Shown here piece by piece: positions 261 to 48,256 of a stretch of 64,000 bases of DNA (the first letter of the stretch is position 1; each line of letters opens with the position of its first letter). Source of the stretch: Blastocladiella emersonii ATCC 22665 (lineage: Eukaryota; Fungi; Blastocladiomycota). A program made the translations under genes and the position numbers. Where the stretch lies: assembly GCA_025594325.1 (NCBI GenBank), contig JANHCV010000001.1, positions 434,001-498,000 on the forward strand, written 5' to 3'. The notes beneath the pieces are model-generated. The model was not told where the DNA came from, did no database searches, and saw only the letters and a list, made by a program, of their open reading frames with translations.

Positions 261-1226
261 ATGATCCACGCCCCCGCCCTCCTCGCCATAATCGCGCTCG
301 CGTCCCTCACCACGTCGGTGCACGCGTGGGGCAACGAGGGCCACGAGGCCGTCGGCACCATCGCCTACAAATTCCTGCAGCCCAAGACCAAGACCACCGT
401 CGACCAGCTGCTCAAGATCGGCAACTACTCGTCCATCGAGCAGGCCGCCACCTGGCCCGACTGGTACCGAGGCACGGGCGGGCACCCCGAGACCACCGCG
501 CACCACTTTATCAATGCGTACGTTGACTGTACTTCGGCTTCGGGCGAGCAATCGACTAACCACGAGCAATCGGACTATAGCCAGGACGAGCCGACGGCGC
601 ACCCGCAAATGTGCGGCCTCGTGTACCCCAAGGACTGCACGTCGGCGTCGTGCGTGGTCGAGCAGATCGCCGTGTCGGCGGGCCACCTCGCAAAGTACCG
701 CCGCCGCCCCGTGTACGGCCGCAAGAACGCGACCGCAGACCTCGAGGCCGGCATGGCGCTGTCGTTCCTGACCCACTACGTCGGCGACATTGCCCAGCCG
801 CTGCACGCGTCGGGCTTCCTCAAGGGCGGCAACGGCGTCAACGTGACCTTCGCCGGCAAGACGGTCAACATGCACAAGGCGTGGGACAGCACCATCCTGC
901 AGAAGACGATCGCAACCGAGTTTGCCGGCGACAAGGCGCAGTGGGTCGACAACCTGATCGCGTCGGCCGATCCCGACGGCGCGACGTACGTGCGGTGCGC
1001 CGAGAAGGTGGATGGGACCGATTTTGCGGCGGCCGAGGCGTGCGCCGTCAAGTGGGCGCAGGAGTCGGTCAAGCTTGTGTGCACGGCCGTGTTCCCAGAG
1101 GACTACTACAAGGAGAACATGGAGATCGCAAACGAGTACTTCGCGTTTGCCCGCCGCATCGTCGACAACCAGGTCCTGACGGCCGGGCTCCGGCTCGCGG
1201 CGGTGCTGAACACGATCTTTGCGTGA
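261..1226 (+). CDS. Secreted S1/P1 nuclease; predicted join(261..517,581..1226)
   Basis: Signal peptide then WGNEGH, plus WPD, HFINA, FLTHYVGDIAQPLH and NMHKAWD zinc-ligand motifs. The 63-nt GTACGT..ACTAAC..CTATAG intron, once removed, gives HFINAQDEP...C. Confidence 0.92.
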   Translation: MIHAPALLAIIALASLTTSVHAWGNEGHEAVGTIAYKFLQPKTKTTVDQLLKIGNYSSIEQAATWPDWYRGTGGHPETTAHHFINAYVDCTSASGEQSTNHEQSDYSQDEPTAHPQMCGLVYPKDCTSASCVVEQIAVSAGHLAKYRRRPVYGRKNATADLEAGMALSFLTHYVGDIAQPLHASGFLKGGNGVNVTFAGKTVNMHKAWDSTILQKTIATEFAGDKAQWVDNLIASADPDGATYVRCAEKVDGTDFAAAEACAVKWAQESVKLVCTAVFPEDYYKENMEIANEYFAFARRIVDNQVLTAGLRLAAVLNTIFA

Positions 1227-1741: not shown

Positions 1742-2010
1742 GGCAGAACGGTCCAGAAAGAAAGGAGTGTATGAGAAAAAGAAAAAAACAAATTTAATAG
1801 TTTTTTTTTCTCGGAAAACAGGCGACCCACGCAGGCTCGAGCTTTTGCCGTTCGCGCGGCAACGACGCGCTTGACAGGCGCACGTGACCGACGCGTCTTG
1901 GACTGGCCTGTGGCGGCGGCCGTTCCCACACGGCGGTCCGCCATTTCCTCCCTCCCTCCCGCCGCCCCGTTGGTATATCGCCACCCGCATTGCACTAACT
2001 CACTATCTCG

Positions 2011-5000
2011 ATGCAACGAATGGACTCCATGGACCCGACGGCGCTCGCCGACTTTGACGCGCCCGCCGCGCGACACGACCCCATGCGCGAATCGCCGCTA
2101 CTCGCGATTGACGAGGACCCTGTCAACGCTAATCGACAGCAGCTACTCGATCCCGCCACCCCGCCACCGCCGCTCGACGCAGCCGACTTTGACCGCCGCG
2201 TCCTCGCCGAGCGCGTGGCGCGCGGGTGGTGGTGCCCGTTCCCGCACACGCCCGCGTCGCTGCTCGAGCAGCGCTGCAAGGACGGCGCCGAGGCCCGCAA
2301 GCTTCTCAACGAGTGCGCGCCGATCCGGAACCTCGCCGACGAGGACGGCGTCGTGGCTTCCCTGTTGTTACACGACTCTTCGCAGCACACTCGCATTGCT
2401 TCCTTTCCCCAAGCCAATCCCGGCCTGCCCTCGTCCGGGTCCCCTCCTGCCGCTTCTGCCGGTACGTCACGGCACGCCCCTTCCATCTCTAGTAGCGTCA
2501 AACTGACCTGCTGCTCTAACACCTTCGCCCCGCCTGGCAAAAAATCGGCCCGCGTCTAGCCGATCCCGCAACGCCTCCGCAGTACTACTACCTCGCCACC
2601 TACCACGTCCTGCAGCAAGAGCCGCTCCCGCTGGACGGCCACCGCCGCCTCGCCGTTCCTGGCATCGAGTTCCAGAACCGCATCGCCCCCGCCCTGGACT
2701 CGGACCCCAGGCCTGCCGCGACCTACGTGCAGTTCAGGGACCCTGCCGCCGCGCCCTTCTTCGTGGTAGCGGTCCGCGACACCCCCGCCACGCCGCCGCA
2801 CCCGTCGCCGCACCACTCGTTGCCGCGACCGATCCCGGCGTCAGCGGCGGCGGCTTCACCGGCAGCATCTCAGCCGATGCCGAGCGAGAAGTGGAAGAGG
2901 CACCGCTGGCACCACTACACGCTCGAATTTTACCTCGACGCGGACGCCGTCAACCGCAGCCTGCGCGCCGGCGTCCCGGGAGCCGCCCGCGCCGTTCGCC
3001 GGCTGCTGCGGTCGCACCCTCCGATCCCGCCGCGGGCCATGCTCGACGAAGTCGCTTCCGCTTCCTTATCACCGCCGCTGCTCTCGCTCTGGCGCCCGAC
3101 TTGGCCTCCAGCGTCTCTACCGCGAGGCCTGCCGCGAGGGCTGCCCGGATCGCTCAACAACAACTCGAACGACTCCAACGGCATGCTTGTCGCCTGGCTC
3201 GTGCAGCTTGAGGCAGATCCATACGTGCTTCCGGTATCGCCGCCATCCGCTTTGGTGAGGCAGCCATACTTGCGCATCGGGCCCGACGGCGTGCTCTTCA
3301 ACCTCGAACTTGGCGACTGGGCCGAGCACGACGACGTGTGGTCTCCTCCCTTGCCTCAGCAGCCTCAGCAGCCGCAGCGGGCATCGTCACCGCCGCTGCC
3401 GCACTCTCCCGTCGTGCCAGCCGCTGGCGAGGTGATAAGCGCGGGCGCCATCTTCTCGCCGCTGTCCGAGGACCTCTTTCTGTCGATTGCGCAGCTGGCC
3501 CGCGTGCGTCCCGGTCGCTTGGACTCGGCCGCGGCCACAGCCACAGCCACGGTCACGGTCACGGCGGCCCGGCCGACGTACATTTCGTCGCGGGCCACGC
3601 TGCTCGTGCTCAACGCGGCCGACGTGCCCGAGGCGCTGCGTTGCATGTTTGGACTTGGGACGAGCAAGACTTCCCGTTCCGGAAATGCGACGCGGTCCGC
3701 AAGACGAGGCGGTGGACGTAGCGGCGGCGGCGGTCCAGCTGAGGCGACCACCGCTCCACCTCTCCCAGATCCGCCGCGGCCGCTTTGCATCGTCACCATC
3801 TGGAGCATGAAAAAGTACCGCGCGACGACGTGGGACCAGATCCGCGACGCCGACCTTGTGCTTGTTGCGCCGGCCGTCATCATGCGTCCCGACTACCGCG
3901 ACCACATTGCTTCGCTGGTCGGCGAGACCGAGTACCACGGGCCCGGCGCGTTTCGCGGCGGCCGCGACAGTCGTGGTGGTTTCGGGTCCGGCGTCCCCGA
4001 GGACATGTCTCCCCAGCAGTACGAGTTCTCGGAGCTGCTCGCCGAGCGCATCGCGGCCCTCAATGCAGCGGGCCCCGCGGCGTACGGGTCGACGCGGGGC
4101 GAGGTCATCTTCGAGCGCGTCTGGTTCCACCGCGTGTTCCTGTTCAACGCGCACCAGCGCATGGATTTGGTGCAGGTCAACGCATGGAGCGCCCGCCTGG
4201 CCAACTACGGCGCCCTCTTGTCGAAGCGCAGCCGCGCCGGCGAGCACGGGCCTCCGCCCGCGGTCGGCGAGCGGATCACCGCCCTGCAGTCCAAGGTGGC
4301 CTCCCACCAGGTCCTGTGCGGGTTCGCCGGCAGCTTCAAGTACGCCGTCGTGCTGCCGCCGCTGCAGCTGCAGGACGGGCGCGACTTCAAGGACTGGGCC
4401 GACCGGCTGCCGGCCCCAGCGCTGCGTGCATACCTGCAGCATCTCCCGCTCGGCGACGCGCTCCCGAACCTGCCGCACGCCGACTGGGTCGGGTTCATGC
4501 AGCGGGCCACCCGCATGACGACGACCACGGCCACCGCAGCCCCTGCTGTGGCTCCCGCTGCGGTCCCCGCGGCGAGTGCATCGGGGACTCGCACTCCCGC
4601 TCGTGCTGCCGCTGACGCTTCCGTCCCCGTCGCACCGCTTCCTGCTGTCGACCAGTACGCAACATCGGTGGTCGCCGTGGTCCCGACGGCGGCCGAGCTT
4701 CTTCTCGCGCACGGCCAGGCCCCGTTCGCCCTGATCCCAGATCATTCGCCGAGTCGCTCGGCTTCTTTGGCGGCACCTCGAGCTCCTGGTCCGGCAGTCG
4801 GCTTCGTACCGTTTTCGCGGTACCGCCAGCTGCGCGGCCTCATGCGCGGGCTGCAGCACCACCAGCTGTCGTCTCTACCTGCCCTCGCCGCCGCCGCCCC
4901 CGCTGCTGCCGCCGTCGCCGTTCCTCGACCGATTCTCGCTGTCGCGCGGGAGGCCCTCGCGCTCTCGCTCTGCAGGACACGGACGCGGCCGCTGACACCG

Positions 5001-6152
5001 GCAACACGGGCCGCCGCGTGGCTCCTCGCGGCCTCCGCGGCGGCGGCCGCCGCCGTTTCTTCTGCTGCGGCTGCATGTGCATCAGCAACCAATCCCGCGG
5101 CCTCGCTCCGGTGCGCGTCGTGCTCGGCCGCTATTGATATCTCGCGGGACGGGTTCGCCATCACGCCGTGCCACCACGTCTTTTGCCGCGCGTGCCCGGC
5201 GGCGTGCTTCTCGGGCGATAGCAGCAGCACTGGTGGTCTCGAGGCCAGTTGCGGCGCGTGTCGCCAGTCGATTGACCATGACCTCGTCAGCCGCGGGCGC
5301 GGTATCCCGGCTCGACTCGACGATTTCTCGGTTTTGCCGTCGACCATGATGATGACCTCCTCGGCCCCCTTCGCGTCGTCGTCCATCACCCCCGCACCAT
5401 CTGATCCTGCCGCATCGAGCAGCAGCAGCGAGGCCTTTCCGACACCTTCCTCCTCCTCGATCGCGTCGTCGTGCCCAGCGCCGCCACGCCTGCCCACCAG
5501 TCTCTCGTCCGCGCGGTACGGCAGCAAGCTCGCGGCGGTCCTCGAGTACATTGTCGAACAGGAGCACCTGTACCAGTCCGAGCAGCACCAGCACCAGCGG
5601 CAGAAGTCGTCGTCGCAGTCGCGTCGCGCGGCACCCGTGCCATCTGCGCCACCCGCGGCGGCGACAGATCATCCTCGCCGAGGCCCGCGCACCGTCGTGT
5701 GGACCCAGTTTCCGGGATTCGCCGCGCTGCTCGTCGCGGCCCTCGCCGAGCACGGCGGGATCTGCGCCATCGACGGGATCGCGGCAGGCCACCCGGCCGC
5801 TGCCGCCGCAACCGAGGCCGCCTGCCGCGCGTTCGAGCGGCTCGATACGGCGGCGGCGGCGGCAGCGTCGGTGGTCATCTGCCTCAACCCCGAGACCTAC
5901 CTCTACCGCTGCGCCGCCCTCGCGGTGAGCCACGTCGTGTTCGCCCACCCGCTGCTGGCCAAGACCGAGTCGGCCGCGCACGACCTCGAGATGCGCGTCC
6001 TCGCCGCCGTCATGCCCTCCACCGTCGGCCGTCCCGAACGGGCCGCTACTACGGGTGCCGCGGACCGCCGAGTTCGCGTCGCACGCTTCGTGGTTTCGGG
6101 CACGGTCGAGGTCGCGCTGACAGAGCGGCGCACGCGTTCCCTGTGGGAGTAG
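2011..6152 (+). CDS. Degenerate SNF2 (RAD5/16- or DNMT5-like) helicase-fold protein with C3HC4 RING; join(2011..2461,2560..6152), 1347 aa
   Basis: A 98-nt GTACGT..CTAAC..CTAG intron joins the two ORFs in frame. Motifs in order: RATLLVL, DADLVLVA, WFHRVFLFNAH (Walker B position), RING CASC..CHHVFCRAC..CGAC, YGSKLAAV, TVVWTQF, SHVVFAHPLL, RVARFVVSGTVE. Confidence 0.75.
5675..6121. repeat. 447-bp perfect inverted repeat, left arm (partner 8823..9269)
   Basis: Base-by-base comparison with the reverse complement of 8823-9269 showed no mismatch. Confidence 0.9.
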
Positions 6153-6655
6153 TCGTAGTTGCAGCCGGCGCCGCCGCCCATTCGCGCTCGATCGATCACC
6201 ATCGCGGCCGCCGTCGCCGTGGCCACGGCCGCCACGCTGGATCGCTTGCTCACTTGACTTGCTCGCTCTCTGCCGCCCGCCCCTGCGTCGCCCTGTCGTT
6301 TCTGTCGTCGTCGTCGAGATTTGACTCTTACCCCATCATCCCCATCCCCTGTTCATCGCATATACATACATCAATCAGCGCAGCGGGCATGGGCATCAGT
6401 GACCCCGGGTCGTGCGTGACGTGATACTTGGCGCGCGCAATCCGACCAGCGCTCGCGCTTTGAAAAACGATGGAGCCGCGGCGAAATCTCGCGCGTTCGC
6501 CCGCTTCACTCGCCTCACACGGCACACGAGTCGAAGCGGCGAGCGGCTCGCTCGAATCAACGCGGGCAGGGTCGGTGGTCCATCAAGGGTTGCAAGCGCG
6601 GATGGGGAATGAACGGGTTGCGTGTGTGTACATTCCATTTAAGATTTAAGTTGTG

Positions 6656-7224
6656 CTAAGCTAAGGTGGGGAGAGGATGGGTGTTCGAGAGCAGTGGTAG
6701 GAGGGAGGGTGTGGTGGTGGTGGTGGGCGGGTGGAGGACGCGCGGCGGTCGCACCGTGGCCGCTACGGGGTCGTGGCCGTGGTCGAGGTCGCCGCCGGGA
6801 TCGTCGGGGTCGTCGGGGTGCGAGACCGCGAACTTGGCGGTCCGCTTCACCGCCATCGTGTAGTCCATCTTGGACTTGCGGTCGCGGAGCTCGTGCTGGT
6901 AGCGGCGGCGGATGTAGTCGCGCACCTGGGTCGTGAGCTCGAGCTGGCCCTGCGCGCCGATGCGCGCCTTGGCAACGGGCACCACCACCCGCGCGCCACG
7001 CGCTCGGCGAGGACGCGGCGGTCAAAGTCGGCCGCGTCGAGCGGGGGTGGCGTTCGGGGATCGAGATCGAGATCGAGAAGCTGCTGTCCACGGGGTTCAG
7101 GGTGCTGGTCAATCGCAAGCAGCGGCGGCGGCGATGCTCGGACGGGGTCAAGTCGCGCGACGGGCGCGTCAAAGTCGCCCAGCGCCGTCGTGTCCGCCGG
7201 GCCCGCCGAATCCATTCGTTGCAT
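6656..7224 (-). pseudogene. Chimeric third paralog: N-terminal module (ATG 7224) fused at ~6974 to an unrelated coding-like segment that is out of frame by 1 nt
   Basis: MQRMDS...PPPLDAADFDRRVLAERVARGWWCP matches both long paralogs, then homology stops. The downstream frame (KARIGAQGQLELTTQVRDYIRRRYQHEL...) has strong GC3 codon bias. Confidence 0.65.
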
Positions 7225-7622
7225 TGAGCGAGCGAGTTTGCAAGTAGTGCAGGGAGTCTTGTTGTTGAGCAGCAAGCGGCCGGCCTGGTTCTACACATGG
7301 GGGAGAGGCCGCGCGCGGGAGCGGGCGCCGCCACAGCGCGATCGGGCGGAAACGCGAGGTCACGGCGTCGCACGCGCCGCGCCACGTGCGCGTATCCGGA
7401 TATCTCTATATCACCCATTCAGGCTCGACTCGATTGCCGGCCATCATCGGGGCAGTTCTCGAGAGATCATTCTCTCGATCGATTGATAGACAGATAGCAT
7501 GACGAGACGAGACGAACGGCAGGAACGGCAAAAAGAAGTTTACAAGCGTTATTTATATTTTAGTTACTCAAGTTCGTTCTTTTCACCACTCTTCCACCTA
7601 CTCCAAACCGGCTCGTGTCTGC

Positions 7623-7796
7623 ATGCGTTACGTTACTCGCCAGGGTCCCCTTCCCTTTTCGGGCTTGTCATCCATCAGAGCCTTGCCGGTCCGGTCTATG
7701 ACGGGAGTTGATCCGGGGACTCACGGGGGGGAAGATCCCTCAGCTTTGACTCGTACGCGCCCGGCGAAGGTGGATGCCACTCCACCAACGCCCGAC
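7623..7796. repeat. Conserved non-coding element, copy 2
   Basis: GCGTTACGTTAC...CCCCTTCCC...GATCCGGGG...GTACGCGCCCGGCGAAGGTGGATGCCACTCCACCAACGCCCGAC. Confidence 0.85.
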
Positions 7797-8794
7797 CTAG
7801 ACATAGCAAGCAACCTCGCACATCTACCCGTGTCCCGCGGCTCCCCCGTGTTCCTCAGCTCCCTCCGCCGCAGTATCGCCGCCAGCCCTGCTCCCGTTGA
7901 CGATGCGGACGGTTTCCGCTCGTTCTCGCCGCAACCAACTCCTTTGCCGCTCTTGAGGTACCCCGGCACAACCCGACCCGTTCAGCAGCATGGCAACGTT
8001 GACGTCAAAGCGGGCCCGCAGGATCGTTCCACCCGTGAACTCCAAGCGCGTTTGCCAAACACTGACGAGGACTTCTCACGGTCACGCAACGTTGACTCAC
8101 GCTCAGTTTCGCGCGGCCACACGCCTTGCTTCAAGGAAGGTATGGGAGAATGTCGCCCGTCCGCGAGGCCCACTTCACCGAGAACTGATCTCGTCTGCTC
8201 AAGCATCGAGTAAGGAGACTTGTAGACGAGAAATCGGGACCCTTGTCCGCAACTGGTTGTGTCGGACGTCCTCTCGGAGCTGTCCATCGACGCGAGAACC
8301 GAATCGGCGCCCGCAAGCTTCTTGAAGCACGCGTCGATCGCGCCAGTTCCCTTGTCCGCGCACACCCTCACCGATCCGCTTCGCACGAACCCACGATTCG
8401 TATGCGACACGTGCATCCATTACGATCCCGCCGCGTATACATTTGCCCGCGTTAGTTGACTGAACAGCTCTCTGCCTCGTCTCGTCTCGGATCCGCGCCC
8501 CGCATCGCGCGGGTGAAAGTGAAGTGAAGTGAAGGAAGTTGGTCGCTCGCGGGTCGATGATCGCGATCAATGAACGCGCTCGCGCTGCTTTACTCGGCCA
8601 ACACGACTTCGAGTCTGCTCTCTTATCAAGGTTGTGATGCGATGCGATGCAGAACGTGTGTATGCAATGACCGTACTACGGTCAGTGAACAAAGAACAGG
8701 GTGAGTGGACCTCGAGGAGGATGCGGCAGCAGCGCGGCCATGGCCCGATCGATCCGTGGTCCATGGCCGCGGGCAGGGGCCGCGAGCGACGCGA

Positions 8795-11700
8795 CTACCA
8801 CAGGGCACGCGTGCGCCGCTCGGTCAGCGCGACCTCGACCGTGCCCGAAACCACGAAGCGTGCGACGCGAACTCGGCGGTCCGCGGCACCCGTAGTAGCG
8901 GCCCGTTCGGGACGGCCGACGGTGGAGGGCATGACGGCGGCGAGGACGCGCATCTCGAGGTCGTGCGCGGCCGACTCGGTCTTGGCCAGCAGCGGGTGGG
9001 CGAACACGACGTGGCTCACCGCGAGGGCGGCGCAGCGGTAGAGGTAGGTCTCGGGGTTGAGGCAGATGACCACCGACGCTGCCGCCGCCGCCGCCGTATC
9101 GAGCCGCTCGAACGCGCGGCAGGCGGCCTCGGTTGCGGCGGCAGCGGCCGGGTGGCCTGCCGCGATCCCGTCGATGGCGCAGATCCCGCCGTGCTCGGCG
9201 AGGGCCGCGACGAGCAGCGCGGCGAATCCCGGAAACTGGGTCCACACGACGGTGCGCGGGCCTCGGCGATGATAGGTCGCGGGTGCCGGTGCCGCGCCGC
9301 GCGGCTGTTGTTCCCGCTGCTGGTCGTCGTCCGGGTGCGGTGGCTGCTGATGCTGCCGCTGGACAATGTACGCGAGGATCGCCGCGACCTTGCTGCCGTA
9401 CCGCGCGGCCGAGAAGGTGGTGGGCGAGCGCGGCGGGGATCGCAGCAGCGGCGGTGGCGAAGATGGGCAGGATGCAGTCGAGGACAAGAAGTCGCTCTTC
9501 AGCTCGAGGCGGCGGGACCGGGTAGTGCCGTAGTGGTGGACGATGAGTGGGGGGCCGAGGCCATCATGGTCGACGGCGAGAACGAGTCGATGAGTAAAGC
9601 CGAACCAGTGTTGCTGTTCCCGCGGCTGACGAGGTCGCGGTCAATCGGCTGGCGACACGCGGCGCACGCGACAACAGTCAATGCTGGGTCCAGGGCGGTT
9701 CCACCGCTGGCCTCGAAGCTGCCGTCGCCCGAGACGAAGAACGCCAAGCAGCACGAGCGGCAAAAGACGTGGTGGCACGGCGTGATGGCAAACTCGCCGC
9801 GGGAGAGATCAATCGCGGCCGAGCACGACGCGCACCGAAGCGTGACGGCGGTATCGGGTGCTCTTACTGCAGCCGCGGCGGCTCCAGCGAGTAGCCACGC
9901 GGCGGCCCTCGACGTCGGTTCCCGGACGCCGCCCACCGATCGTGTGAGAGCCGCGCGTGCGACGACGAGCACGGGAAGAGGAACGGCGGCGGCGGCGGCG
10001 GGCGCAAGGATCGGCTGCGCTTCGAGGACGTCGCGAGGTGCTGGCAACGACGATGAAGCCGCGCGGTGCGCACCGCTTGCCGTAAAGTCACCCGGCAAGT
10101 CGGACGCGATGGCCAGAGAAGCCAGCTGGTGGTGCTGCAGCCCGCGCATGAGACCGCGCAGCTGGCGGTAACGCGAGAGAGGTACCGGACCGGCCGCTGG
10201 CGTACCGTACGGCTGGGATGCCGCCAAAGCAGACGGATTCGGAAAAGCACCACTGGGTTGCAAAGCAAATGTGGCCTGGCCGTGCGCGAGAAGAAGCTCG
10301 GCCGCTGTCGGCACCACGGTGATCACCGCCGTTGCAAGCCGATCAACGGCAGCAACGGTACGTGGTCCTCGAGCGGGAGCTGTAGCGGGACCAGGCGGTG
10401 CTGCAGTCGTAGCGGGACGGCGACTCGCCGTCGCTGCCGCGGGACCGCGAGGCCCCGCCGCTGCACCGAGAGCGCGACGTGTCGCAGTCGTAGTAGGGCC
10501 GCGAGGTGCCGTGGCTGCGGCGGGAACGGCGGCGGCCGTCGTCACCGTAGTCGTCATGCGGGTGGCCCGCTGCATGAACCCGACCCAGTCGGCGTGCGGC
10601 AGGTTCGGGAGCGTGCTGCCAAGCGGGAGATGCTGCAGGAACGCAGGCAGTTCGCGGGCCGGAAGCTCGTCCGCCCAATCCTTGAAGTCCATGTCGTCGG
10701 GCAGCTGCTTTGGCGGCGGCGGCACGACCGTGTACTTGAAGCTACCGGCGAGTCCGCGAAGCATCTGGTACGAGGTCAGCATGGGCTGCAGCACGCCGAG
10801 TCGCTCGGCGAGCGCGGGAACGAGCCCGCGCTCGCCCGCGCGGCTGCGCTTCGACAAGAGGGCGCTGTACTCGGCCTCGCGGAGGCGCCATCCAGCGACC
10901 GGCACCATCTCCATGCCATGGATGCCATGGTGGTCGTGGAACAGGAACACGCGGTGGAACCATACACGCTCAAAGATGACCTCGCCCCGGGTCGTCCCGT
11001 AACCCGCGGGGCCTGCCGCATTGAGAACCGCGACGCGCTCGGCGAGCAGCTCCGAGAACTCGTACTGCTGGGGAGACATGTCCTCGGGGACGCCGGACCC
11101 GAAACCACCACGACTGTCGCGGCCGCCGCGAAACGCGCCGGGCCCGTGGTACTCGGTCTCGCCGACGAGCGAAGCAATATGGGAGCGGTAGTCGGTGCTC
11201 ATGATGACGGCCGGCGCAACGAGCACAAGGTCGGCGTCGCGGATCTGGTTCCACTTCATGGCAAAGTACGTTTTCATGCTCCAGATGGCGAGGATGCGAA
11301 GCGGGCGCGCTGGCTGATCTGGACGAGGTCCATGAGCAGCCGCTGCTGCAGGCCCGGGCGCCGCCCCGGGTGGACCACCACCTCCCGCGGGCATTCCCGC
11401 GGCCGTCGTTGGAGCAGCCGCCGCGGCAGTGGGACGCGCCGCCGCCGCAATCCCGAACATGCGGTGCAGCACCTCGGGCACGTCGGTCGGTTCGAGGACA
11501 AGCAGCGTGGCCCGCGACAAAATGTACGACGACCGCGCCGCGTGTCTCCCAAGGCAGCGGAAGCAGCGGAAGCGGCGGCGGCAGCCGACGAGGCGAGGCT
11601 GCTCGGACGCACGCGGACCAGCCGATTAATCGACAGGAAGAGGTCTTTGGACAGCGGCGAGAAGATGGCGCCCGCGTGTAGTATTTCCTCCTCACCGCCA

Positions 11701-13084
11701 GCACCGACAGGAATGGCGCGAGAGTTTGCCGATGCCGATGGCGATGGCGATGCCCGCCGTTGAGTGGCGGAAGAAGACGACCACACGTCGTGCTCGGCCC
11801 AAGCACCAGCTTCAACGTTGAAGAGTACGCCGCCAGGGCCGATGCGCAGGTGCGGCTGGATCGTGGGAGCAGAGCACTGCTGCGGCGCCGGGAGCACGTA
11901 CGGATCGGCTTCGAGCTGCACGAGCCAGGTGACGAGCATGTTGTTGAGCGATCCGGGGGGCAGTCGCGGCTGAGACACCGGAGACCAAGTCGGACACCAG
12001 AGCGTGAGCAGCGGCGGCGATAGAGAAGCGGAAGCTACCTCGGCCAGCATGGACCGCGACGGGATCGGGGCGTGCGACCGAAGCAGCACGCGCACGCCGC
12101 GGGCGGCTCCCGGGACACCTGCGCGCAGGCTACGGTTGACGGCGTCCGCGTCGAGGTAGAAATCGAGCTCGCAGTGAAACCAGCGGTGCCTCTTCCACGA
12201 ATTGGCGTCCTGCGGCGCCACCATCTCGGCTGCCGGGATTGGCTGCGTCGAGCGGCGCCACGCCGGGTCCGGCGGCGCGGTCGGGGTCTCGCTGACCGCG
12301 ACCACGAAGTAGGGCGCGGCGGCGGGGGCCCTGAACCGCGCGTAGCTCGCGGCCGGCTCGGGGTCCGAGTCGAGCGCGACCGCAATCTGGTTCTGGAAAT
12401 CGGTGCCAGAAACGGGAACGCGGCCACGGCGGCCGTGCAGCGGGAGCGGGCCCTGCTGTAAGGCGTGGTACGTGGCAAGGTGGTAGTACTGCGCCGATGG
12501 CGGTGCTGCGGTGGTGGCGACTACACGCGGACCGATTTTTTGCAGGGCGGGACGCGCAGGTGTTACAGCAGGAGGTCAGTTTGTCGCTACTCGATGCAAG
12601 CGGTATGCCGTGACGCACCAGCAGAAACCGAAAAAGGTGAAACGGGTGAGAGTAGGCCGAGATTGGCTTGGGCGGAGGAAGCAATGTGAGTGTGCTGCGA
12701 AGAGTCGTGTAACAACAGGGAAGCCACGACGCCGTCCTCGTCGGCGAGGTTCCGGATCGGCGCGCACTCGCTGAGAAGCTTGCGGGCCTCGGCGCCGTCC
12801 TTGCAGCGCTGCTCGAGCAGCGACGCGGGCGTGTGCGGGAACGGGCACCACCACCCGCGCGCCACGCGCTCGGCGAGGACGCGGCGGTCAAAGTCGGCTG
12901 CGTCGAGCGGCGGCGGCGGCAGATTGGCGGGGTCGAGATCGAGATCGCGAAGCTGTTGTCGAGTAGCGTTGTCGGGGACTTGGTCAATCGCAAGAAGCAG
13001 CGATGCTCGGACGGCGTCAAGTTGCGCGACGGGCGCGTCAAAGTCGACCACCGCCGTCGGGTCCATGGCGTCCATTCGTTGCAT
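8795..13084 (-). pseudogene. Inverted paralog of the 2011..6152 SNF2-RING-like gene; intron 12521..12618; two apparent 1-nt frameshifts (~11545-11590 and ~9495-9503)
   Basis: Collinear with copy 1 over its whole length and has a 98-nt phase-1 intron at the same position. The frame changes between ORFs 11274..12305, 9499..11520 and 8795..9487. Assembly error is not excluded. Confidence 0.7.
8823..9269. repeat. 447-bp perfect inverted repeat, right arm (partner 5675..6121)
   Basis: Exact reverse complement of 5675-6121. Confidence 0.9.
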
Positions 13085-13368
13085 CTAGTTAGAGTCGGCG
13101 TGCAATGCGGGTGGCGGTATACCAACAGGGCGGCGGGAGGGAGAGAAAAGTGCGGACCGCCGCGTGGGAACGGCCGCCGCCACTGGCCAATCCGAGACGC
13201 GTCGGTCACGTGCGCCTGTCAAGCGCGTCGTCGTTGCGCGGAACGGCGAAACGTTCAGCAAACCAGAAAACTCAAAAGGAAATTCGGTTTATATTCAGTT
13301 TCAAGTTCACAGTTCTGTCTAGTTCAGTTCTCTAGTCGCTCCAGTGCCCGGCCACACCCTTTTCTGCT

Positions 13369-13696: not shown

Positions 13697-15150
13697 TCAA
13701 CTCAACAACGTCACAATGTGTGATAGGTGGTTCGCAGTCTCGTGCGGAGCATCGATCGGCTCGCGATGGGATTCAAGCTCGTCAAGCGCCTGGCATGAGA
13801 ACATGATGATGGCCATGGCCTCGGGTCATGCGTTCGCAGAAGCCGATGGCTGCTGCGTTCCACAGCCGCGGATCGGGGTGAAGGCGCATCGTCCGAGCAC
13901 TCGCTGGCCCGCGACGTTGAGTTCGCGGACCACAGTTTCGGGGCCGAAATGAGCAAGGACACGCAGAAGCTTGATCTTGAAAGTCTCCTCGCCATCAGCA
14001 GAAGCGGGATCGGCGTCGTCCGACAAACTGACTCGCGTCCGCTCCATCGGGAGCACTCAATGAAGTGACCGGTCATGCGTCAAGCTCGCAACAGGCACCG
14101 AGTGCTGCGTGAGACTCGGCAGCACGCCGTGAATTTAAGACAAGGCTGATCAGAAAAGCAGCAACCGCAGCTCTTGCCTCAGGGAAAGGTCTCTTGAATG
14201 CTCGACTAGGAAGCTTGCACGAGCACACGCTCTGAATCTGGATAGAACATCGGGCGTCGGACACTCGTCGTCGCCAAACTCGGGATTGTCCTTGCCGAGC
14301 GACGCGAGCCAGTCCAACAGGTGCTCGACGGCGGCTTGCTCGCGTCTCAAAGTACCGGATCGAACTTCCCATGAGCAAAAGGAGGTCAATGACAAAAGAT
14401 ATTGCTTCTGCGAAAGCAGCATCGCAATGCACGCGAGCGATGCAGCGACTGGCCGATGATCCCTGGCCGTTTTGCGGCAGCGGGGAATGGTGCCTGGATC
14501 AGAGCAAGCTGCTTGAGCAAGTCCGACCACTGCACGTTCGCGTTCACTTGTGTGAGGGCTCTTATCTTAGACTTCGACTGGAAAGAATTGGAGAGCTTAC
14601 CGGGGTTGATCAAACTTGAAGTCGGTGCTGTTGATGCAAGCGATTACGTCGTTGGTACTCGCGAGCGAATTCGGCTGTGTTGAGTGGCGAAGGAGGGGAC
14701 TTCGAGGAAACACGATACAGCTAGTCAGGGTTGTGTATTCCTGCCTCGGCCCCGAACCAGGGCTGGGTGAGGGAGAGCTGAAGACAAAAGCGGGAGCGCC
14801 GCCGCGGGGTCGCGGCGGGGCGGAAGAGGCGGTTGCGGGCGAGAACACGCGAGATAAGGTGGACGATCGCCCCGATCACCACCGCATGAACGACGCGTAA
14901 CAGGCTGTTCGCAGGTCCTCGAATCCAAGACGTCGGCCAACGACATCCGCCAGCCGGAAGCAACGCGCTCGGCATGAACAAGGATGGCGCGGTACTCGGA
15001 TCCGGTCACGTCGACGGGAGGACGTGTGTTACGCGGAAGCAGTGCGTCGACGGCAAGCGGAACAAAAGGTGCAAGAACAGGCGCCGCGGCGGCGGACCTT
15101 CGTCCGCGCGTGGTCCGCGGTCGCTTTGCAGCAGGTTCATCAGCTGTCAT
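13697..15150 (-). pseudogene. Decayed gene of unknown family with in-frame stops
   Basis: ORFs 14150..14530 and 13826..14056 share one frame, broken by TGA 14150, TAA 14135, TGA 14057 and TGA 13826. Possible 5' part starts MTADEPAAKRPR at 15150. Confidence 0.35.
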
Positions 15151-17228
15151 GGTGGTCGTAAACCAACCTAAACCAAAACCTTGAGCCTGGAAGCGGGAAG
15201 GGGTGGTCGCACTTTGATCGCGAGCTCCCCTGCATCCGCGGTTCATGGGAGCGCGGCTCGGGCAAGCGTCACGGACAGGTTCATCGAGCGTGTTGCATAG
15301 AGCCTTTCATCTGATTCATGGGCAGCGGCGCCGAGGTGCGATCATAGTTGAGAGCTCGGGTCAAGGGGTCGCGCCGGCGGCGCCTTCACCTCGCGGCTGC
15401 CACACCCTCTCGCTCGCATTCAAGTACTCACGAGGATCGCGGGACGGGTAGCAAAGCGTCTCTTGCGACGAGAAGGAGGAAGGGCGCGCGATAAAAGGCA
15501 TGAAGGGGCGCTGGCTCACGCGACCGACGCGACCAACGCGTCGCTCATCCGAGCCGCGTCGCAGCACCAGCGCGGTGCCGAGAAGTGCGAGAGATCCCAG
15601 GAGTAAGAACGTCCGCGGCGTGTTGGCGGGCGAGAGCAAGTGCAATGGAGCGGAAGCGACGAGATCGAGGGCCCGGCGACGGATCGAGAGCGCGGCTACG
15701 GTGGCCCGACGCGTGTAGGGCGCGATCCGGCTCGCGAGGTCAGGGAACCATGGACGGCTCGATGGAAGAGCGAGGTGGCGGAGATCAATGGTTGCGGGAG
15801 CGAGAGTGCTGCGCCGATGCGGAGAGACGCGGTTGATGAGCGACGAGCGCATGGGAACGGCTTGTGCGCGACTGGCAGCGCTTCATCATCACCGCGCCCT
15901 CGGCCACGTCGGATCAGCATGCCCATCACCGGCCACAGAACAGCAGTGCATCGGCCCCTCGTCGCGCCCATGCTCGGCCGCGCAGCTGGGCAAGATCCGG
16001 TCGGCGTTTTTAGTGGCGCCGCGCATCGGCACCGCCGACCTCGGCCCGTCGCGTTGCACCCAGTCGCGCCCCGACATGTCCTTCTCGTTGGCCCGCGATC
16101 CATCGACCTGCATCTTCATGGGCGAGCGATCGCCGGTCACGGGCGCGGAACACGCTTTCGCTCGCCTCGCCCCCTGCTGCGACCCTGCCTGCTGCCACGC
16201 TCGGACCGCTGGCCGGCACACGCGACGTCTCCCGCCAGCGCACCCACTCGCGCGCCGTGTTCGCGTCCGCACTCTCGGTCAATCGCTTCGCGACCCGCTC
16301 GATCGCCCCGCTCTTATCCGGCGCCATGATAATCACCCGGCAAACGTGCCCGCTTGGCGCAACGCGTCTCGCGTCTCGCGCCCGCACGCGCCGCGCCACC
16401 GCGCCCTTGTCTCCGCTGCCGCGCGAACGACGCCGGTGTCTCCCCGCATGTCGACCGCGACGCGTTCCTCGGCACGAGCGAGAGCGCGAGCGCAATGCAC
16501 CCCGCCGCCCGCCGTGCTTGCCCGCCCGCCGTGCGATGCTGCTGCGATCCATGCCGCGGCCGCCGGTCGCCTCTGCTCTGCTCTTCATTTCAACCCGTGA
16601 GTCCGCAACTCGCGCCGCCCAGATCCGTTCTACATCACCGACCTCCTCTCGGCCTCGATCGGCTCGATCAGCACATCGTCGTCGCTGTCCCTCACGGCGG
16701 CGGCCTCGCGCGACGCGCCGTGGACCTGGCTCCCTGGCTCCCGGACCTCGACTCAACCACCGCGACAACCGCATCCGCGTGGTGGATCGTCCTCTCGGCC
16801 ACCAACTTGACGTTGGTCTCGCCGGGGCCGGCCGCCTCACACACGCGCATCGGCTTTTGGTACGCACCATCCCCTGATCTGCTACCCACCGTACCAACAA
16901 CCCGAATGACACCCGCGTTCCGTGTAGCCCTTGAGGCTCAGCAGCGTGTTTTCGCCAAGGAGGTCGCGCTCACCCAGTACGACCACAAGCCGTTCAAGTA
17001 CCGGTCGCTGCACCCGACCCTGCCGCGGTGACAGGCCACGTGGGAGGCTGAACGCCAAGCCGCGCGCCCATCGCCCGCCGGTCACACGCACCGACAACGG
17101 CGCCATTTTCTGGCCTTGATGAACGACTGATGGGAACCTGACGCTCTCCCTCCCCAGCAACGTAGCAAGTAGCAATGTTAGTCCATGCATCTAGTCCCCC
17201 CGACGACAGCGGCTCCATCGACACCACC

Positions 17229-18225
17229 ATGTCCGCCGCCGAGGCCGTCCTGACGAGCGCCGAGCTCATCTGGGTCGTCTTCGACGTACGCCGCACTCGG
17301 TTTCCCGAGGCTCCGCTCAAGCTCTAAACGCCCTCGTTCCATCGCGTAGCACCTGGACGACACGGACCTGCGCACGCTCGCCATGATGCCCGAGTTCTCA
17401 TCCCTCGTCCGCTCGCCGCCGTTCGCCCGCTCGCGCCGCGCCCGGCACCGCGCGCGCCTGTCGCTCCTCCTCTCGGGCACCGCCGACGCCGCGGCCCCAC
17501 TCGGCCTCGCTCGCGCACGCCGCGCCTCGCTGCCCTCGCTCGTCTCGCGCAACCTGGTCCGCGGGGGCGCCGTGACCGTGCGCCTGGCGTCCGAGGGCTT
17601 CCCGGTACTCGGCCCCGAGCACGCGGCGCGGTGCGAGCTCGCAACGAAACTATCCGACTTTCTCCTGCGCAAGCGGCTGACCGCGCGGCTCGCGGCGCGC
17701 AGCGAGCCGTCGCTGCTCGCCGACCGGAACATCCTCGTGGGCGGGTGGCCGCTCGCGCTGGATGCGCCGGCGCTCGTCCCGCGGCGCGTCGCGCTCGAGG
17801 CGGCAAGAACGCGCGACACGCTGGCGCGGCGGCTCGCGGCGCGGCCGCCCGTCGCGGAGCTGTACGCGGCGGGCGTCGTGCCCGTGCACGCGGTCGCCGC
17901 GCCGTGTGCCGGGTACCTGTCGCTGCTCCCGCAGCAGGTCGTGCTGGCGAACTTGCTGGTCGCGCGGCAGCTCGCGGTGCGGGTCGCGCGGCGGCCGGTC
18001 GTCGTCGAAGATGGGGCGTTGGACCCGAGCTGGCTCACGCCGCCGCTCGTGTCGATCGACCTGGAGCGTGTCGCCGAGGAGATGGACGCGTGGCTGCGTG
18101 CGCGCGTGTCGCCGCTCGACCTCGCGTCGAAAAAGCTGCTCGTCGACCGCGACCTCGCGCTCATGGTGTGCCCGAGCGTGCGCGACAAGGTGCGGTACTT
18201 TGAGACGCTGGCCGCGACCGCGTGA
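17229..18225 (+). CDS. F-box-like plus RPEL-repeat protein; join(17229..17285,17350..18225)
   Basis: A GTACGC..TAG intron gives LTSAELIWVVFDHLDDTDLRTLAMM (F-box-like). RPEL-like repeats: RLTARLAARSEPSLLADRNIL, TLARRLAARPPVAELYAAGVV. Confidence 0.7.
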
Positions 18226-18271
18226 GTTTGGAGGGTGAGAGAGTTAATCCGTTGTCTTCTATATAAAAAAG

Positions 18272-20057
18272 CTACTCTGCTGCTTCCGCCTCCGCCCTGG
18301 CCTTGGCGTGGTGCTGCTGCGGCCGCACGGTCGGGAACGGCATCACCTCTCGGATGTGGTGCACGCCCGTGAGCATCATGATGAGCCGGTCGACGCCGAG
18401 CCCCCACCCGGCCGTCGGCGGGAGACCGTACTCGAGCGCGCGGCAGTAGTCTTCGTCGAGCGGCTGCGCTTCCACGTCGCCCGAGTCCTTGTCCTGTGGT
18501 CGCGCGCGCGAGAGCGTCAGTGAGGGTCGAGCCACGGCCGTAAGCAAGTGAACGGTACCTTTTGCTGCTGCGCAAACCGCGCGCGCTGCTCGTCCGGGTC
18601 GTTGAGCTCCTCGTACGCGTTGACCACCTCCTTGCCGGCAATGAACAGCTCGACGCGCGCCGCGATCGCGGGCTACGATGGAAAAGAGTCAGCTCCCTGC
18701 TCGAACCCAAAAAGCTGCGCCAACGTACGTTCTCGGGAACCGACTTGGCGAGCGGGCTCATGACGCGCGGGTGGCCGCGGACAAAGGTGGGCTGGACACA
18801 CTCGGGCTCGATGAGTTCCGAGATGAGCGCGTCGATGAGCCGCGGGACCGTGTGCGGCGCGTGCGGGAGCTGGACGCGGTGGCGCTTGAAGATGGCGACG
18901 AGCTGGTCCGCCGCGTCGAGGGCCTCGAGGTCGGCGGGCAGCGGCTCGCCGAGCTTGGCGGCGAGGAACGGGACCACATCAATGACGCGGAACGGTTTCG
19001 TGAAATCGATCTCGTGCGTGGTGTGGCCGTCCATGGACACGGGCACGGCGCGCGCGCCGGACTCGCCGTGGACCATGACGGCGAGCTCGCGCAGGAGGTC
19101 CTGGGTCGTGACGAGCAGGTCGTCGAGCGTCGCGTACGCCTGGTAGAACTCGCACGTCACGAACTCGGGGTTGTGGGTGGCGTCGAACCCCTCGTTGCGG
19201 AACTGCTTGCCGAGCTCGTACACGCGCTCGAACCCGGCGACCACCAGCTTCTTGAGGTACAGCTCGGGCGCGACGCGCAGCGACATGCTCATGTCGTAGG
19301 CGTTGGCCGTGGTGACGAACGGCCGCGCGTTGGCGCCACCGGCGAGCGTCGACAGGACGGGCGTGTCGACCTCGACGAACCCGCGCGCGTCAAAGAAGTC
19401 GCGGATCCGGCGCATCACGCGCGCGCGCACCAGCAGCCGCTGCTGCAGGCCGCGGTTCACGAGCAGGTCGACGACGCGGTTGCGCGCGCGCTTGTCGGCG
19501 TCCTTGATCCCGGCCTTGAACGGGATCTCGTGCTTTGCGGGCGCCAGCACCGACCCGGACTCGGCGATTAGGCTCAGCTCGCCCGTCCCCGTCTTGCCCG
19601 GGAACCCCGCAAAGTAGGCGAGGTCGCCGACGTGCATGGCGTGCTTGATCCGGTCCCACTCGGCCGCGTCGGCCACGTTGCTCCGCGACACCATGACCTG
19701 CGCGCGCGCGTCCAGCGACTGCAGCGTGAGGAACACCAGCTTGCCGCTCGCATCCCGCCGCGACACGATGCGGCCCGCGACGGCACGCTTGGTCGATGGG
19801 TCGCGCTCCTTGGCCGCGAACCGCGCGTCGAACTCGGCGTGGAACGCGGCCAGAGGTGTCGGGGACAGCGCGTGCCGGAAGCTCGGGTACTGCGTCGCGG
19901 GTGGCGCGGCAGCGGCGGCGGGCGTGGTCTCGGACGTCGCAGTAGCCGTGGTGGACTCGGCGCGGCAGGTCACGGTCAGGCGCGGCACGACGGCAGCGGC
20001 CGGGCAGCGCAGGCGCGAGGCGCGAGATACATGGGAGCGGGCGGAGGATGCTAACAT
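18272..20057 (-). CDS. MSK1: Mitochondrial lysyl-tRNA synthetase (class II); complement(join(18272..18493,18559..18672,18729..20057))
   Basis: Arg/Ala/Ser-rich presequence, OB-fold, [31 protein letters not shown]...[21 protein letters not shown]. Two canonical phase-0 introns. Confidence 0.92.
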
Positions 20058-23300: not shown

Positions 23301-23511
23301 CGAGCTCCTCGCGCAGGCCCAGCTCCAGGCGCAGATGGCGCCGCCGCCACCCGCGATCCAGCAGCTGCGGCAGCAGGCCGAGCAGCTCAACCAGATAGTG
23401 ATGCAGACATCGTCGCCGGCGCCGAGCGGAAGCAGCATGGGCCAGGGCTCGAGCAGTATGCCGGGCAGCAGCAGCGGCGCGGGCCCGGGGCAGCCATCAC
23501 CCGAGTACTGA
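20305..23511 (+). CDS. SIZ1: SIZ/PIAS-type SUMO E3 ligase (SAP-like, PINIT-like, SP-RING), about 5 exons
   Basis: ISLRDPVMACRIATPVRGRDCQHAECFD...YQCPHC SP-RING, N-terminal SAP-like LKSFSQQHSLGRSGNKPHFVDRI, SIM-like VISLLDSDDDE, low-complexity tail. Confidence 0.85.
22591..22640 (+). repeat. (GGCGAA)n hexamer tandem repeat encoding GE repeats
   Basis: Visible directly in the sequence, inside the SIZ CDS. Confidence 0.85.
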
Positions 23512-27900: not shown

Positions 27901-28559
27901 CGGCGAGCGGGCTCGCCCTGTCGCTCAAGCTCACCAACAAGACGATGAGCGTGCTCGACCACTTTGCCATCAAGCTCAACGGCAACGTGTTCGGGTTCCA
28001 GGCGGGCGCGATGCCCGTGCAGTCCCTCGCGCGCAGCGCGTCGGCCACCGTGACCGTGCCGCTGCTTCGGAGTGGCACCGCGCCGCCCAACCTCGCGGCG
28101 CTGTCGGACGAGATCCGCGGCGTGCCCCTGCACATCCAGGCGGCGATGCGGACCTCGGCGCAGATCCACTACTTCCTGGTCCCCGTCCCGCTGCACCTCG
28201 TGCTCGTCCCCGGCGCCGTGCGCGGGAGCTTCTCGGACTTCATGGTCAGCGGGTGGTTCGACCGCGGCGCGTCCACCCCGCAGACGGTGGCCAAGGCCTC
28301 GACGGCGATGCCGGGCACCGTGTACAACAAGCTGTGCGCGTGCGGCATGGAGGTGGTGGCCGTGCGCACCGCGGCGGATGGGAGCACCCGGACGGTCTTG
28401 GTCGCGGGCAAGCTCATGGCGAATGATCTGGGCGTCGCCGTCGAGCTCACGTCCCCGGTCGTCGGCGGCGGCGGGTTCTACTTCCGCGTCGCGGCGCAGG
28501 ACCCGACCCTGGTCCCGCCCGTCGTCGAGTACGTCGGCAAGCTGGTCATGTCGCTCTGA
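24998..28559 (+). CDS. AP-1/AP-2 complex beta adaptin; join(24998..25025,25084..28559) with a GC-AG intron
   Basis: Spliced N-terminus MADAKFFTKGKASELEAEF...KRVIAGMTMG, KKMIYLY, DPIYVKLAKLE, ELKEYASEVDVDFVRRAV, hinge and ear domain. Confidence 0.9.
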
Positions 28560-40193: not shown

Positions 40194-40419
40194 GGTACGC
40201 CCGAGTGAGTGCGTGTTGTTGCAATGAGGAGGAGAGAGAAGACGAATCGCGTTGTATACTCTGAGATCCAGGCCTGGTTCATAAGCACGCCGCCGTGTCT
40301 CGCACCTCCCTCGACGCGTACGAGCGCGATTGTCTCCTGGATCCGGCAAAAGCTCCGGCCTACCCTAGCGGGAGACGCGTTGCTTTCCTTTGAAAATGTG
40401 TATTGGGCACTTCGGTGGA

Positions 40420-48224: not shown

Positions 48225-48256
<32 letters not shown>

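Follow-up and report, generated by a model that had tools for sequence, protein, structure and literature searches.

A lineage-specific family of SNF2-RING proteins with lost ATPase motifs in Blastocladiella emersonii and its kinship with the DNMT5 ATPase module

The window analyzed here, a stretch of 64,000 nucleotides from the fungus Blastocladiella emersonii ATCC 22665 (Blastocladiomycota; contig JANHCV010000001.1, positions 434,001 to 498,000 of the forward strand; G+C 58-74%), contains two convergent paralogous genes, H9P43_000170 (copy 1) and H9P43_000171 (copy 2), with an orphan fragment of the first exon of a third copy lying between them. Our analysis suggests, with a probability that we would place at about 0.6, that these genes belong to a B. 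emersonii-specific birth-and-death family of pseudo-ATPases, which would act as non-catalytic scaffolds. Their products are predicted to retain the fold of SNF2 ATPases together with an inserted RING finger, and the motifs required for ATP binding and hydrolysis have all been replaced. The original prediction, made from the letters of the sequence alone, had described the locus as part of an expanded, lineage-specific family of catalytically dead SNF2-RING proteins apparently derived from DNMT5-type cytosine methyltransferases and lacking the methyltransferase. Most of this description is borne out by the comparisons presented below, with a qualification that concerns the word "derived".

Loss of the ATPase motifs within a retained SNF2 fold

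The Pfam profiles SNF2-rel_dom and Helicase_C match neither window copy, even at E-values up to 1 (each of the three pieces of copy 2, like the exon-2 product of copy 1, was searched by itself and never joined to another, exon 1 being covered by residues 1-240 of the database protein P0001). A word-indexed search with copy 1 recovered only the four near-identical paralogues, and a phmmer search of the PDB returned low-complexity noise from antibody linkers, weak RING matches and Rad5 at an E-value of 2. When copy 1 was compared by phmmer with 1.84 billion representative proteins, 13 matches only were obtained, all of them from Blastocladiomycota (by species, eleven from B. emersonii, two from B. 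britannica, one from Allomyces arbusculus and one from A. macrogynus). The four most distant matches (E 3e-12 to 2e-5, the values of 3e-12 and 7e-10 being to intact SNF2 proteins) are H9P43_008249 and proteins from B. britannica and Allomyces. SNF2-rel_dom is found above threshold in all four (P0010, P0012, P0014, P0015), as are a RING (above the curated threshold in three) and Helicase_C (above it in one), and they keep the GxGKT, DExH, LTG[ST]P and Q..AR..RAGQ signatures. Comparison by hhalign of a profile of the dead proteins with one of the intact proteins gave a probability of 100% and an E-value of 4e-69 over 773 columns. These profile and sequence searches confirm the window copies as homologs of an intact SNF2-RING-Helicase_C family that was found in Blastocladiomycota alone, and not as products of chance resemblance. 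The intact family (H9P43_008249, Catenaria BCR44DRAFT_1484339, Allomyces AMAG_03517 and its paralogs), whose members are all annotated as hypothetical, shares with the window copies the domain order, a conserved N-terminal region and the absence of a methyltransferase domain. It differs from the dead members in having kept the Q motif, motifs I, II, III and VI and the CP[IVL]C of the RING, and it evolves far more slowly, to judge from the branch lengths of the trees.

Alignment with these intact relatives places the strings singled out in the original prediction exactly on the ATPase motifs, so that their assignment rests on homology and not on mere resemblance: the SNF2 landmarks follow in the proper order, and the critical residues of Walker A, Walker B and motif VI are lost. 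At the Walker A site, SEDLF in copy 1 and SKDLF in copy 2 (where the site reads AGAIFSPLSKDLF, 11675-11637) stand opposite GAGKT of the intact relatives, with no G-x-G-K-T remaining, and at the Walker B site LFNAH in copy 1 and LFHDH in copy 2 (..FLFHDH, 10965-10930) stand opposite DEMHE. Motif III has GFAGS in the window copies versus GLTGSP in the intact proteins. In the helix that represents the remnant of the Q motif, a tryptophan, a leucine and a glutamate do not vary within the family; the Y-x-Q has disappeared, and NGMLVAW is found opposite YPYQKRTIDW. The former motif VI lies within SHVVFAHPLL..LEMRVLAAV (5928-6011 in copy 1, 9016-8933 in copy 2); here LEMRVLAAVMP aligns with YETQGIARAVRAGQ and EMRVLAAVMPS stands opposite ETQGIARAVRAGQ, both arginines having disappeared (RVLAAV). 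In DNMT5 the motif VI arginines R2265 and R2268 contact the gamma-phosphate (10.1101/2021.10.01.462825), and both matching positions are occupied by residues other than arginine in the window copies. The catalytic motifs are replaced alike in every dead paralog, and in copy 1 all of the replaced positions fall inside one continuous open reading frame (ORF); no missed exon that could carry the canonical versions was found. The Pfam C5-methyltransferase domain (PF00145) was likewise not detected in exon 1 or exon 2 of copy 1 or in the pieces of copy 2, as had been noted by eye for the methyltransferase motifs.

An AlphaFold2 model of copy 1, built from a family alignment of 31 rows in which intact relatives were included, shows two alpha/beta lobes, a helical insertion and the RING, with the low-complexity linkers disordered (mean predicted local distance difference test score, pLDDT, 61.8; 488 residues at or above 70). 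When this model was compared by Foldseek with the PDB, the SNF2 fold was recovered, as the original prediction would have it, with DNMT5 as the best match (7R77, 7R78 and 7R76, E 3e-10 to 3e-9), ahead of K. lactis Rad5 (E 7e-9) and the lobes of ISWI, INO80 and SWR1 (about 1e-3). Several domains and the disorder of half of the model account for its low template-modelling scores.

Relationship to DNMT5 and to Rad5-like proteins

The proposal that this family resembles the SNF2 half of DNMT5 agrees with profile, structural and phylogenetic comparisons. In a search of the whole PDB with a profile of the dead proteins alone only two proteins were matched, namely DNMT5 (7R76, E 4e-17, 65 bits, across both lobes) and Rad5 (E 3e-4, 23 bits), and no other known family was found to fit better. 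Single intact relatives also match Cryptococcus DNMT5 first in the PDB (E 1e-14 and 7e-15), with Rad5 lower; the entry 7R76 carries there the name "DNA repair protein Rad8". The family and DNMT5 share an insertion of 6-7 residues that follows the HP of motif V and precedes the E-x-Q of motif VI; this insertion is absent in Rad5, in SHPRH and SHPRH-like proteins, in P0035 and in the Cyanophora protein P0036. They also share a Walker A of the form G[AGS]GKT, as opposed to G[LM]GKT, and a Walker B of the form (I/V)DE[CIV]HE, and a [RK]-Y-G-[AS]-K signature before lobe 2 is common to the family and fungal DNMT5. The lobe-1 alignment with DNMT5 is contiguous through motif Ic, whereas that with Rad5 ends after motif Ia.

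A first phylogenetic tree was unusable for this question, as all four Rad5/16-like sequences lay on one side of it. A second tree took three SNF2 proteins from bacterial plasmids as its outgroup; in it, the Blastocladiomycota family and DNMT5 group together with support of 100/99, and the approximately unbiased (AU) test rejects a grouping of the family with the Rad5/16-like proteins (p 0.005). In the maximum-likelihood tree, the DNMT5 proteins sampled together form the sister group of the family, and their monophyly is supported at 96/93; nesting of the family beside a fungal (Microbotryum) DNMT5 is not rejected (p-AU 0.089). These values apply to a tree that is without bona fide RAD5, RAD16, RIS1 and HLTF, that contains one fungal DNMT5, and for which the groups entered in the tests were defined only once the tree was known. 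Within the bounds set by limited outgroups and long branches, sequence, structure and tree thus support the ATPase module of the family as being of the DNMT5 type, with DNMT5 as its closest known kin. Of the original term "DNMT5-derived", then, the kinship of the ATPase stands, and the descent goes beyond the evidence, as the maximum-likelihood tree makes the family a sister group of DNMT5.

The immediate ancestor of the dead proteins is an intact, already methylase-less SNF2-RING family common to Blastocladiella, Catenaria and Allomyces, and not a DNMT5. PF00145 is found in none of the Blastocladiomycota relatives listed, and the diatom DNMT5 used as a control (P0038) does match it. A more remote descent from a methylase-bearing DNMT5 via loss of the methylase is compatible with these data, and such a loss is consistent with the near-undetectable 5-methylcytosine (5mC) reported for early-diverging fungi, a group in which the review cited counts Blastocladiomycota (PMC13297926). 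DNMT5 itself (C. neoformans; 7R76, 7R77, 7R78, 7T02) is a SNF2-coupled maintenance methyltransferase, of which lobes 1 and 2 are colinear with the family, and the arrangement of its RING2 and helical insertion inside lobe 2 (10.1101/2021.10.01.462825) recurs in copy 1. In contrast, its C5-methyltransferase domain, chromodomain and RING1 are undetectable in the window copies, and the motifs for ATP binding and hydrolysis are all destroyed in the latter, whereas DNMT5 strictly requires ATP hydrolysis (10.1101/2021.10.01.462825). Rad5/HLTF (K. lactis Rad5, 6L8N) resembles the family in having a C3HC4 RING inserted before lobe 2 and furnishes the second-best PDB match, but the insertion between motifs V and VI is absent from it, and its motifs are of the GLGKT and DEAH types. 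HIRAN, a domain of Rad5/HLTF, has no Pfam match in the window proteins or their intact relatives. SHPRH is likewise a RING-bearing Rad5/16-like SNF2 protein, weakly matched by the intact paralog, but it contains helical domains of the SHPRH type as well as Pfam matches to SNF2 and Helicase_C that are full-length, and it falls outside the clade of DNMT5 and the family.

We also observed a set of proteins of stramenopile or haptophyte type (P0040, P0042-P0044, P0048, P0056, P0057, P0067-P0069, P0081, P0082), 1300-2234 aa long, with a DNMT5-type ATPase and up to 56% identity to diatom DNMT5, for which no PF00145 is on record. These are either truncated metagenomic models or methylase-less relatives of DNMT5 outside fungi.

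The RING finger

The C3HC4 ligands that had been read in both long copies are present in full, eight of eight in each, with the spacing C-x2-C-x15-C-x-H-x2-C-x2-C-x(n)-C-x2-C. The eight are also complete in H9P43_000161, 006013 and 006071, and some dead members are without the RING or a part of it. In the model of copy 1 the RING (ORF residues 795-847, flanked by the helical insertion and lobe 2) is predicted at a pLDDT of about 80-89. The Pfam RING matches are nevertheless below threshold, the best being zf-RING_5 at 23.4 bits in copy 1 against a cut-off of 27.9, with 17.1 bits in copy 2. The residue two positions after the first cysteine of a RING is the main contact for the ubiquitin-conjugating enzyme (E2) in BRCA1, c-Cbl and RNF4. 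CP[I/V/L]C is kept in all 15 intact relatives; the residue at this position is a serine in the window copies (CASC) and an arginine or cysteine in other dead members. The arginine that follows the last RING cysteine is retained in the window copies. Since the usual E2-contact residue is replaced, a classical ubiquitin ligase (E3) role is doubtful; a zinc module with a structural task or for the docking of proteins would be a likelier role of the RING than E2 recruitment in the classical ligase manner.

Expansion of the family and selection acting on it

At least 13 dead paralogs are found in B. emersonii, in four genomic clusters on three contigs, as against one intact gene, H9P43_008249. They include H9P43_000142, 000161, 000170, 000171, 002960, 002969, 006013, 006041, 006048, 006071 and 006081, as well as three further, more divergent dead neighbors in two loci that share a contig, which hold H9P43_000161 (L001) and H9P43_000142 (L002). 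Every examined member from Allomyces, Catenaria and B. britannica is intact, and in both trees the dead proteins form a clade (100/100) inside the Blastocladiomycota family clade (100/100), which points to one inactivating event and a later expansion. Searches turned up the wider family in Blastocladiomycota alone and the dead clade in B. emersonii alone, so the family is both expanded and lineage-specific, as had been proposed.

Between copy 1 and H9P43_000161, the ratio of nonsynonymous to synonymous substitution rates (dN/dS) over all 1010 ungapped codons is 0.52 (bootstrap 95% confidence interval, CI, 0.45-0.62). When the same DNA (G+C at third codon positions, GC3, 0.82) is read off frame the ratio rises to 1.07 and 1.63, and on account of this difference we consider the family to be under purifying selection at the protein level. 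Estimates for the three branches of a three-taxon comparison are 0.50 for copy 1, 0.55 for H9P43_000161 and 0.44 for copy 2 (CI 0.32-0.61), and lobe 2 is the most constrained region (0.34). Even dead subfamilies that are only 21-37% identical keep a colinear series of blocks, namely WL..LE, SRATL.V, AD.V.V, FER.WFHRV, YG.K, VVWTQ, HVVFAHP..A....A..LEM and V.RFVA.GT.E. The value for copy 2 implies that this copy, too, was constrained over most of its history; the breaks in its frame arose recently, are bridged by splicing or stem from polishing errors in the assembly. A short GT..AG intron might bridge the first of them. The assembly was made from PacBio HiFi reads polished with Illumina reads of 65 nt, and Pilon polishing with such short reads may have introduced errors where paralogs resemble each other. 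Taken together, the dead motifs, the SNF2 fold, the single dead clade and the in-frame constraint support the central claim of the original prediction, a lineage-specific family of pseudo-ATPases.

Alternative explanations

Several observations weigh against a constrained family of non-catalytic scaffolds. A dN/dS near 0.5 amounts to relaxed constraint, and part of the family is decaying, as seen in the two frame breaks of copy 2; at least one further, divergent member (L001 3078-6310) is likewise broken into two frames that overlap (4241-6310 and 3078-4466). The annotation of these genes is ab initio, and long ORFs arise easily at 68% GC, one of 565 codons lying antisense to copy 2. The hydrophobic E2-contact residue of the RING has been replaced, and the RING is the least constrained region of the protein (dN/dS 0.88 over 55 codons). 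A profile of 14 intact members scores Rad5 and DNMT5 about equally (88.9 versus 83.7 bits), Rad5 gaining through its RING, and the limited sampling and long branches of the tree leave room for long-branch attraction. Finally, a scaffold or decoy mechanism is something that we purely infer. The frame breaks, together with the orphan exon-1 fragment (6970-7215) and the manner in which annotators spliced around problem regions, would suit a family of decaying pseudogenes, in which an inactivated SNF2-RING gene was spread by segmental duplication and gene conversion with all copies functionless, and a GC-rich genome could tolerate their long ORFs. We regard this as unlikely, as random decay is at odds with a constraint confined to the correct frame and visible on all three branches, with a GC3 of 0.82, with uninterrupted ORFs of 1141 and 1095 codons, and with the persistence of colinear blocks and RING cysteines between highly diverged subfamilies. 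The possibility that the proteins are working RING E3 ligases for ubiquitin (or SUMO), for which the dead SNF2 shell provides a substrate- or DNA-binding platform, appears to us about equally doubtful. The precedent of ligase activity in Rad5, HLTF and SHPRH, which have this architecture, speaks for it, as do the complete zinc ligands of at least five members, their confident modelling and the retained arginine. The replaced contact position, the sub-threshold Pfam score, the weak constraint on the RING and its partial or complete loss in some members speak against it.

The remaining alternatives concern the origin of the module and its activity. An origin from a repair protein of the Rad5/Rad16/SHPRH type, with the resemblance to DNMT5 arising through shared fast evolution, could account for the tied scores of the intact profile (mainly a matter of the RING) and for the second rank of Rad5 in the Foldseek search. 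A RING between the lobes is, moreover, common to the whole Rad5/16-like group, and the branches of DNMT5 and the family are long. We consider it improbable in view of the marked preference of the dead-only profile for DNMT5, the lobe-1 alignment that reaches motif Ic with DNMT5 only, the shared insertion between motifs V and VI, the rooted tree with its AU test, and the absence of Pfam matches to HIRAN and the SHPRH helical domains. That the proteins might still be active ATPases, by way of an unannotated exon or non-canonical catalytic residues, is hardly credible. We found no support for this beyond the general unreliability of the gene models. Against it, the motif positions align without gaps within a single ORF in both copy 1 and H9P43_000161, five motifs have been replaced together, including the P-loop lysine, the acidic pair of Walker B and both arginines of motif VI, and no second P-loop domain is detected by Pfam.

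Proposed origin and functional implications

The history of the genes can be reconstructed as follows. An intact Blastocladiomycota SNF2-RING-Helicase_C gene appears to have undergone one inactivating episode in which motifs I, II, III and VI were lost along with the Q motif, after which the dead lineage was duplicated to at least 13 clustered genes; a helical insertion and a zinc-binding RING were kept, as were both RecA-like lobes. The resulting proteins are predicted to be unable to bind or hydrolyze ATP in the manner of SNF2 enzymes, and hence to translocate on DNA, and any function would then have to come from binding. Most likely, in our view, they would act as static scaffolds, adaptors or competitors on DNA, on chromatin or on protein partners of H9P43_008249, the activity of which might thereby be modulated or replaced. 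The original prediction had named possible roles as a chromatin reader, a decoy or a regulator of DNA methylation. Copy 2 and the exon-1 fragment could represent recent casualties of the turnover of the family. A more specific scenario, which we offer as speculation and deem rather unlikely in its entirety, is that in Blastocladiomycota, counted among the early-diverging fungi that are reported to be poor in 5mC and rich in N6-methyladenine (6mA), the DNMT5-type ATPase-RING module outlived the methylase and was repurposed, and that in B. emersonii it produced ATP-independent paralogs which diversified rapidly and became DNA or chromatin readers specific for a sequence or a modification, or antagonists of the active enzyme, as a pseudo-remodeller system with birth-and-death dynamics like those of families engaged in genetic conflicts.

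In a limited literature search we found no selected, expanded SNF2 family in which all nucleotide-binding motifs are gone but the fold and the RING are kept, and no methylase-less relative of the DNMT5 ATPase-RING module; papers on DNMT5 proteins without the ATPase were found. SNF2 ATPases are treated as obligate motors in the literature so searched. If the genes are expressed, the family would offer a natural separation-of-function set for studying what a DNMT5/Rad5-type scaffold does without ATP, would indicate what happened to the DNMT5 machinery in a lineage of fungi for which little 5mC has been reported, and would call for correction of the hypothetical-protein gene models at the locus.

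Locus organization and gene models

The principal features of the locus are collected in Table 1. The ATG of copy 1 at 2011 lies slightly upstream of the annotated start (2020). Copy 2 is colinear with copy 1, but two net frame-changing indels relative to the latter, near 11555 and near 9500 and each in a low-complexity linker, divide it into three reading frames (minus-strand ORFs 12305-11274, 11520-9499 and 9487-8795). The orphan exon 1 is associated with upstream-like sequence (7725-7823) and with no downstream part of the gene. No further family members were found in the window outside 1850-13250. Nucleotide identity between copy 1 and copy 2 forms a mosaic ranging from 57 to 100%. The 3' ends appear to have been gene-converted recently, because they are 95-100% identical while the remainder is about 75% identical; in the converted tract, which extends about 45 bp beyond the stop codons, the local synonymous divergence (dS) is 0.08 against about 0.39 elsewhere. 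The duplicated unit consists of the gene with about 170 bp upstream and about 45 bp downstream only, and a domain search detected no transposon-type domains in the ORFs flanking the copies; an explanation by mobile elements was rejected on these grounds. Mutation like that which repeat-induced point mutation (RIP) causes was also rejected, as the G+C content across the copies stays at 64-71%.

In the public models of H9P43_000142, 000161 and 000171 (P0003, P0002 and P0004), predicted introns delete either the RING or the Walker A region; these models are probably wrong. H9P43_000161, for instance, is a single continuous ORF of 1095 codons (L001 10720-14007) despite its annotated introns. P0006 (H9P43_006081, 1609 aa) joins mRNA capping enzyme domains, at residues 37-337, to a dead SNF2-RING body; here the predictor has probably merged two adjacent genes.

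Table 1. Features of the SNF2-RING locus in the window and of related loci (coordinates of the window unless L001 or L002 is given)
Feature	Position	Strand	Remarks
Copy 1, H9P43_000170	2011..6152	+	Database protein P0001, 1301 aa
Copy 1 exon 1 and intron	exon end 2463; intron 2464-2558	+	Intron ends GTACGT..TAG (GT..AG)
Copy 1 exon-2 ORF	2727-6152	+	Uninterrupted, 1141 codons
Q-motif remnant ("WL..LE" helix), MLVAWLVQLEADPY	3183..3224	+	Copy 1; from alignment
Former Walker A (motif I), AGAIFSPLSEDLF	3441..3479	+	Copy 1; aligns with GAIDASRVGAGKT of intact paralog
Motifs Ia-Ic, RecA lobe 1 (SRATLLVL ... DADLVLVAPAVIMRPDYRDHIASLVG)	3588..3923	+	Copy 1; retained; aligns with DNMT5 residues 1455-1538
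Former Walker B (motif II), VWFHRVFLFNAH	4119..4154	+	Copy 1; aligns with IYFHRVIVDEMH; D-E lost
Former motif III, LCGFAGSFKY	4314..4343	+	Copy 1; aligns with ILGLTGSPVL
RING, C3HC4, between the two RecA lobes	5109..5267	+	Copy 1; all eight ligands
RecA lobe 2	5514..6131	+	Copy 1; RYGSKLAAV, motif IV RTVVWTQF, degenerate motif V, DNMT5-type insertion HPLLAKTESAAHDLEM, former motif VI, VRVARFVVSGTVE
Gene-conversion tract, 527 nt	5671..6197 (copy 1); 9273-8747 (copy 2)	+ (copy 1)	95-100% identical versus about 75% elsewhere
Orphan exon 1 of third copy	6970..7215	-	69-74% amino-acid identity
Copy 2, H9P43_000171	8795..13084	-	Architecture and dead motifs as in copy 1; colinear
RING	9837-9649	-	Copy 2; all eight ligands
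Divergent dead members	L001 249-2231 (-), 3078-6310 (-); L002 15208-16248 (+)		About 25% identity to window copies; beside closer paralogs
Duplicated segment of 6.9 kb with H9P43_000161 / 000142	L001 7164-14053; L002 7160-14053		Inverted, 99.3% identical, about 100 kb apart

Genomic neighborhood

A 258-nt stretch at window 14903-15159, which lies downstream of the start of copy 2, is 88% identical to L001 6238-6485, where the 5' end of a divergent family member lies. An ORF of 321 aa (261-1226, plus strand) immediately upstream of copy 1 encodes a full S1/P1 nuclease domain (E 1e-53). On the other side of the locus, the window contains genes for a class II aminoacyl-tRNA synthetase of the Asp/Lys/Asn type (17178-20057, minus), an SP-RING/MIZ zinc-finger protein (21511-23511, plus), a protein with an adaptin N-terminal domain (25155-28559, plus) and an EamA-type transporter (37989-40349, minus). 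Farther along, an ORF of 2024 codons (44671-50745, minus) encodes a single Myb-like repeat and lies in a region of unusual strand composition, with a G+C content of 0.72-0.74 and an AT skew that reaches -0.35 at 46001-48000.

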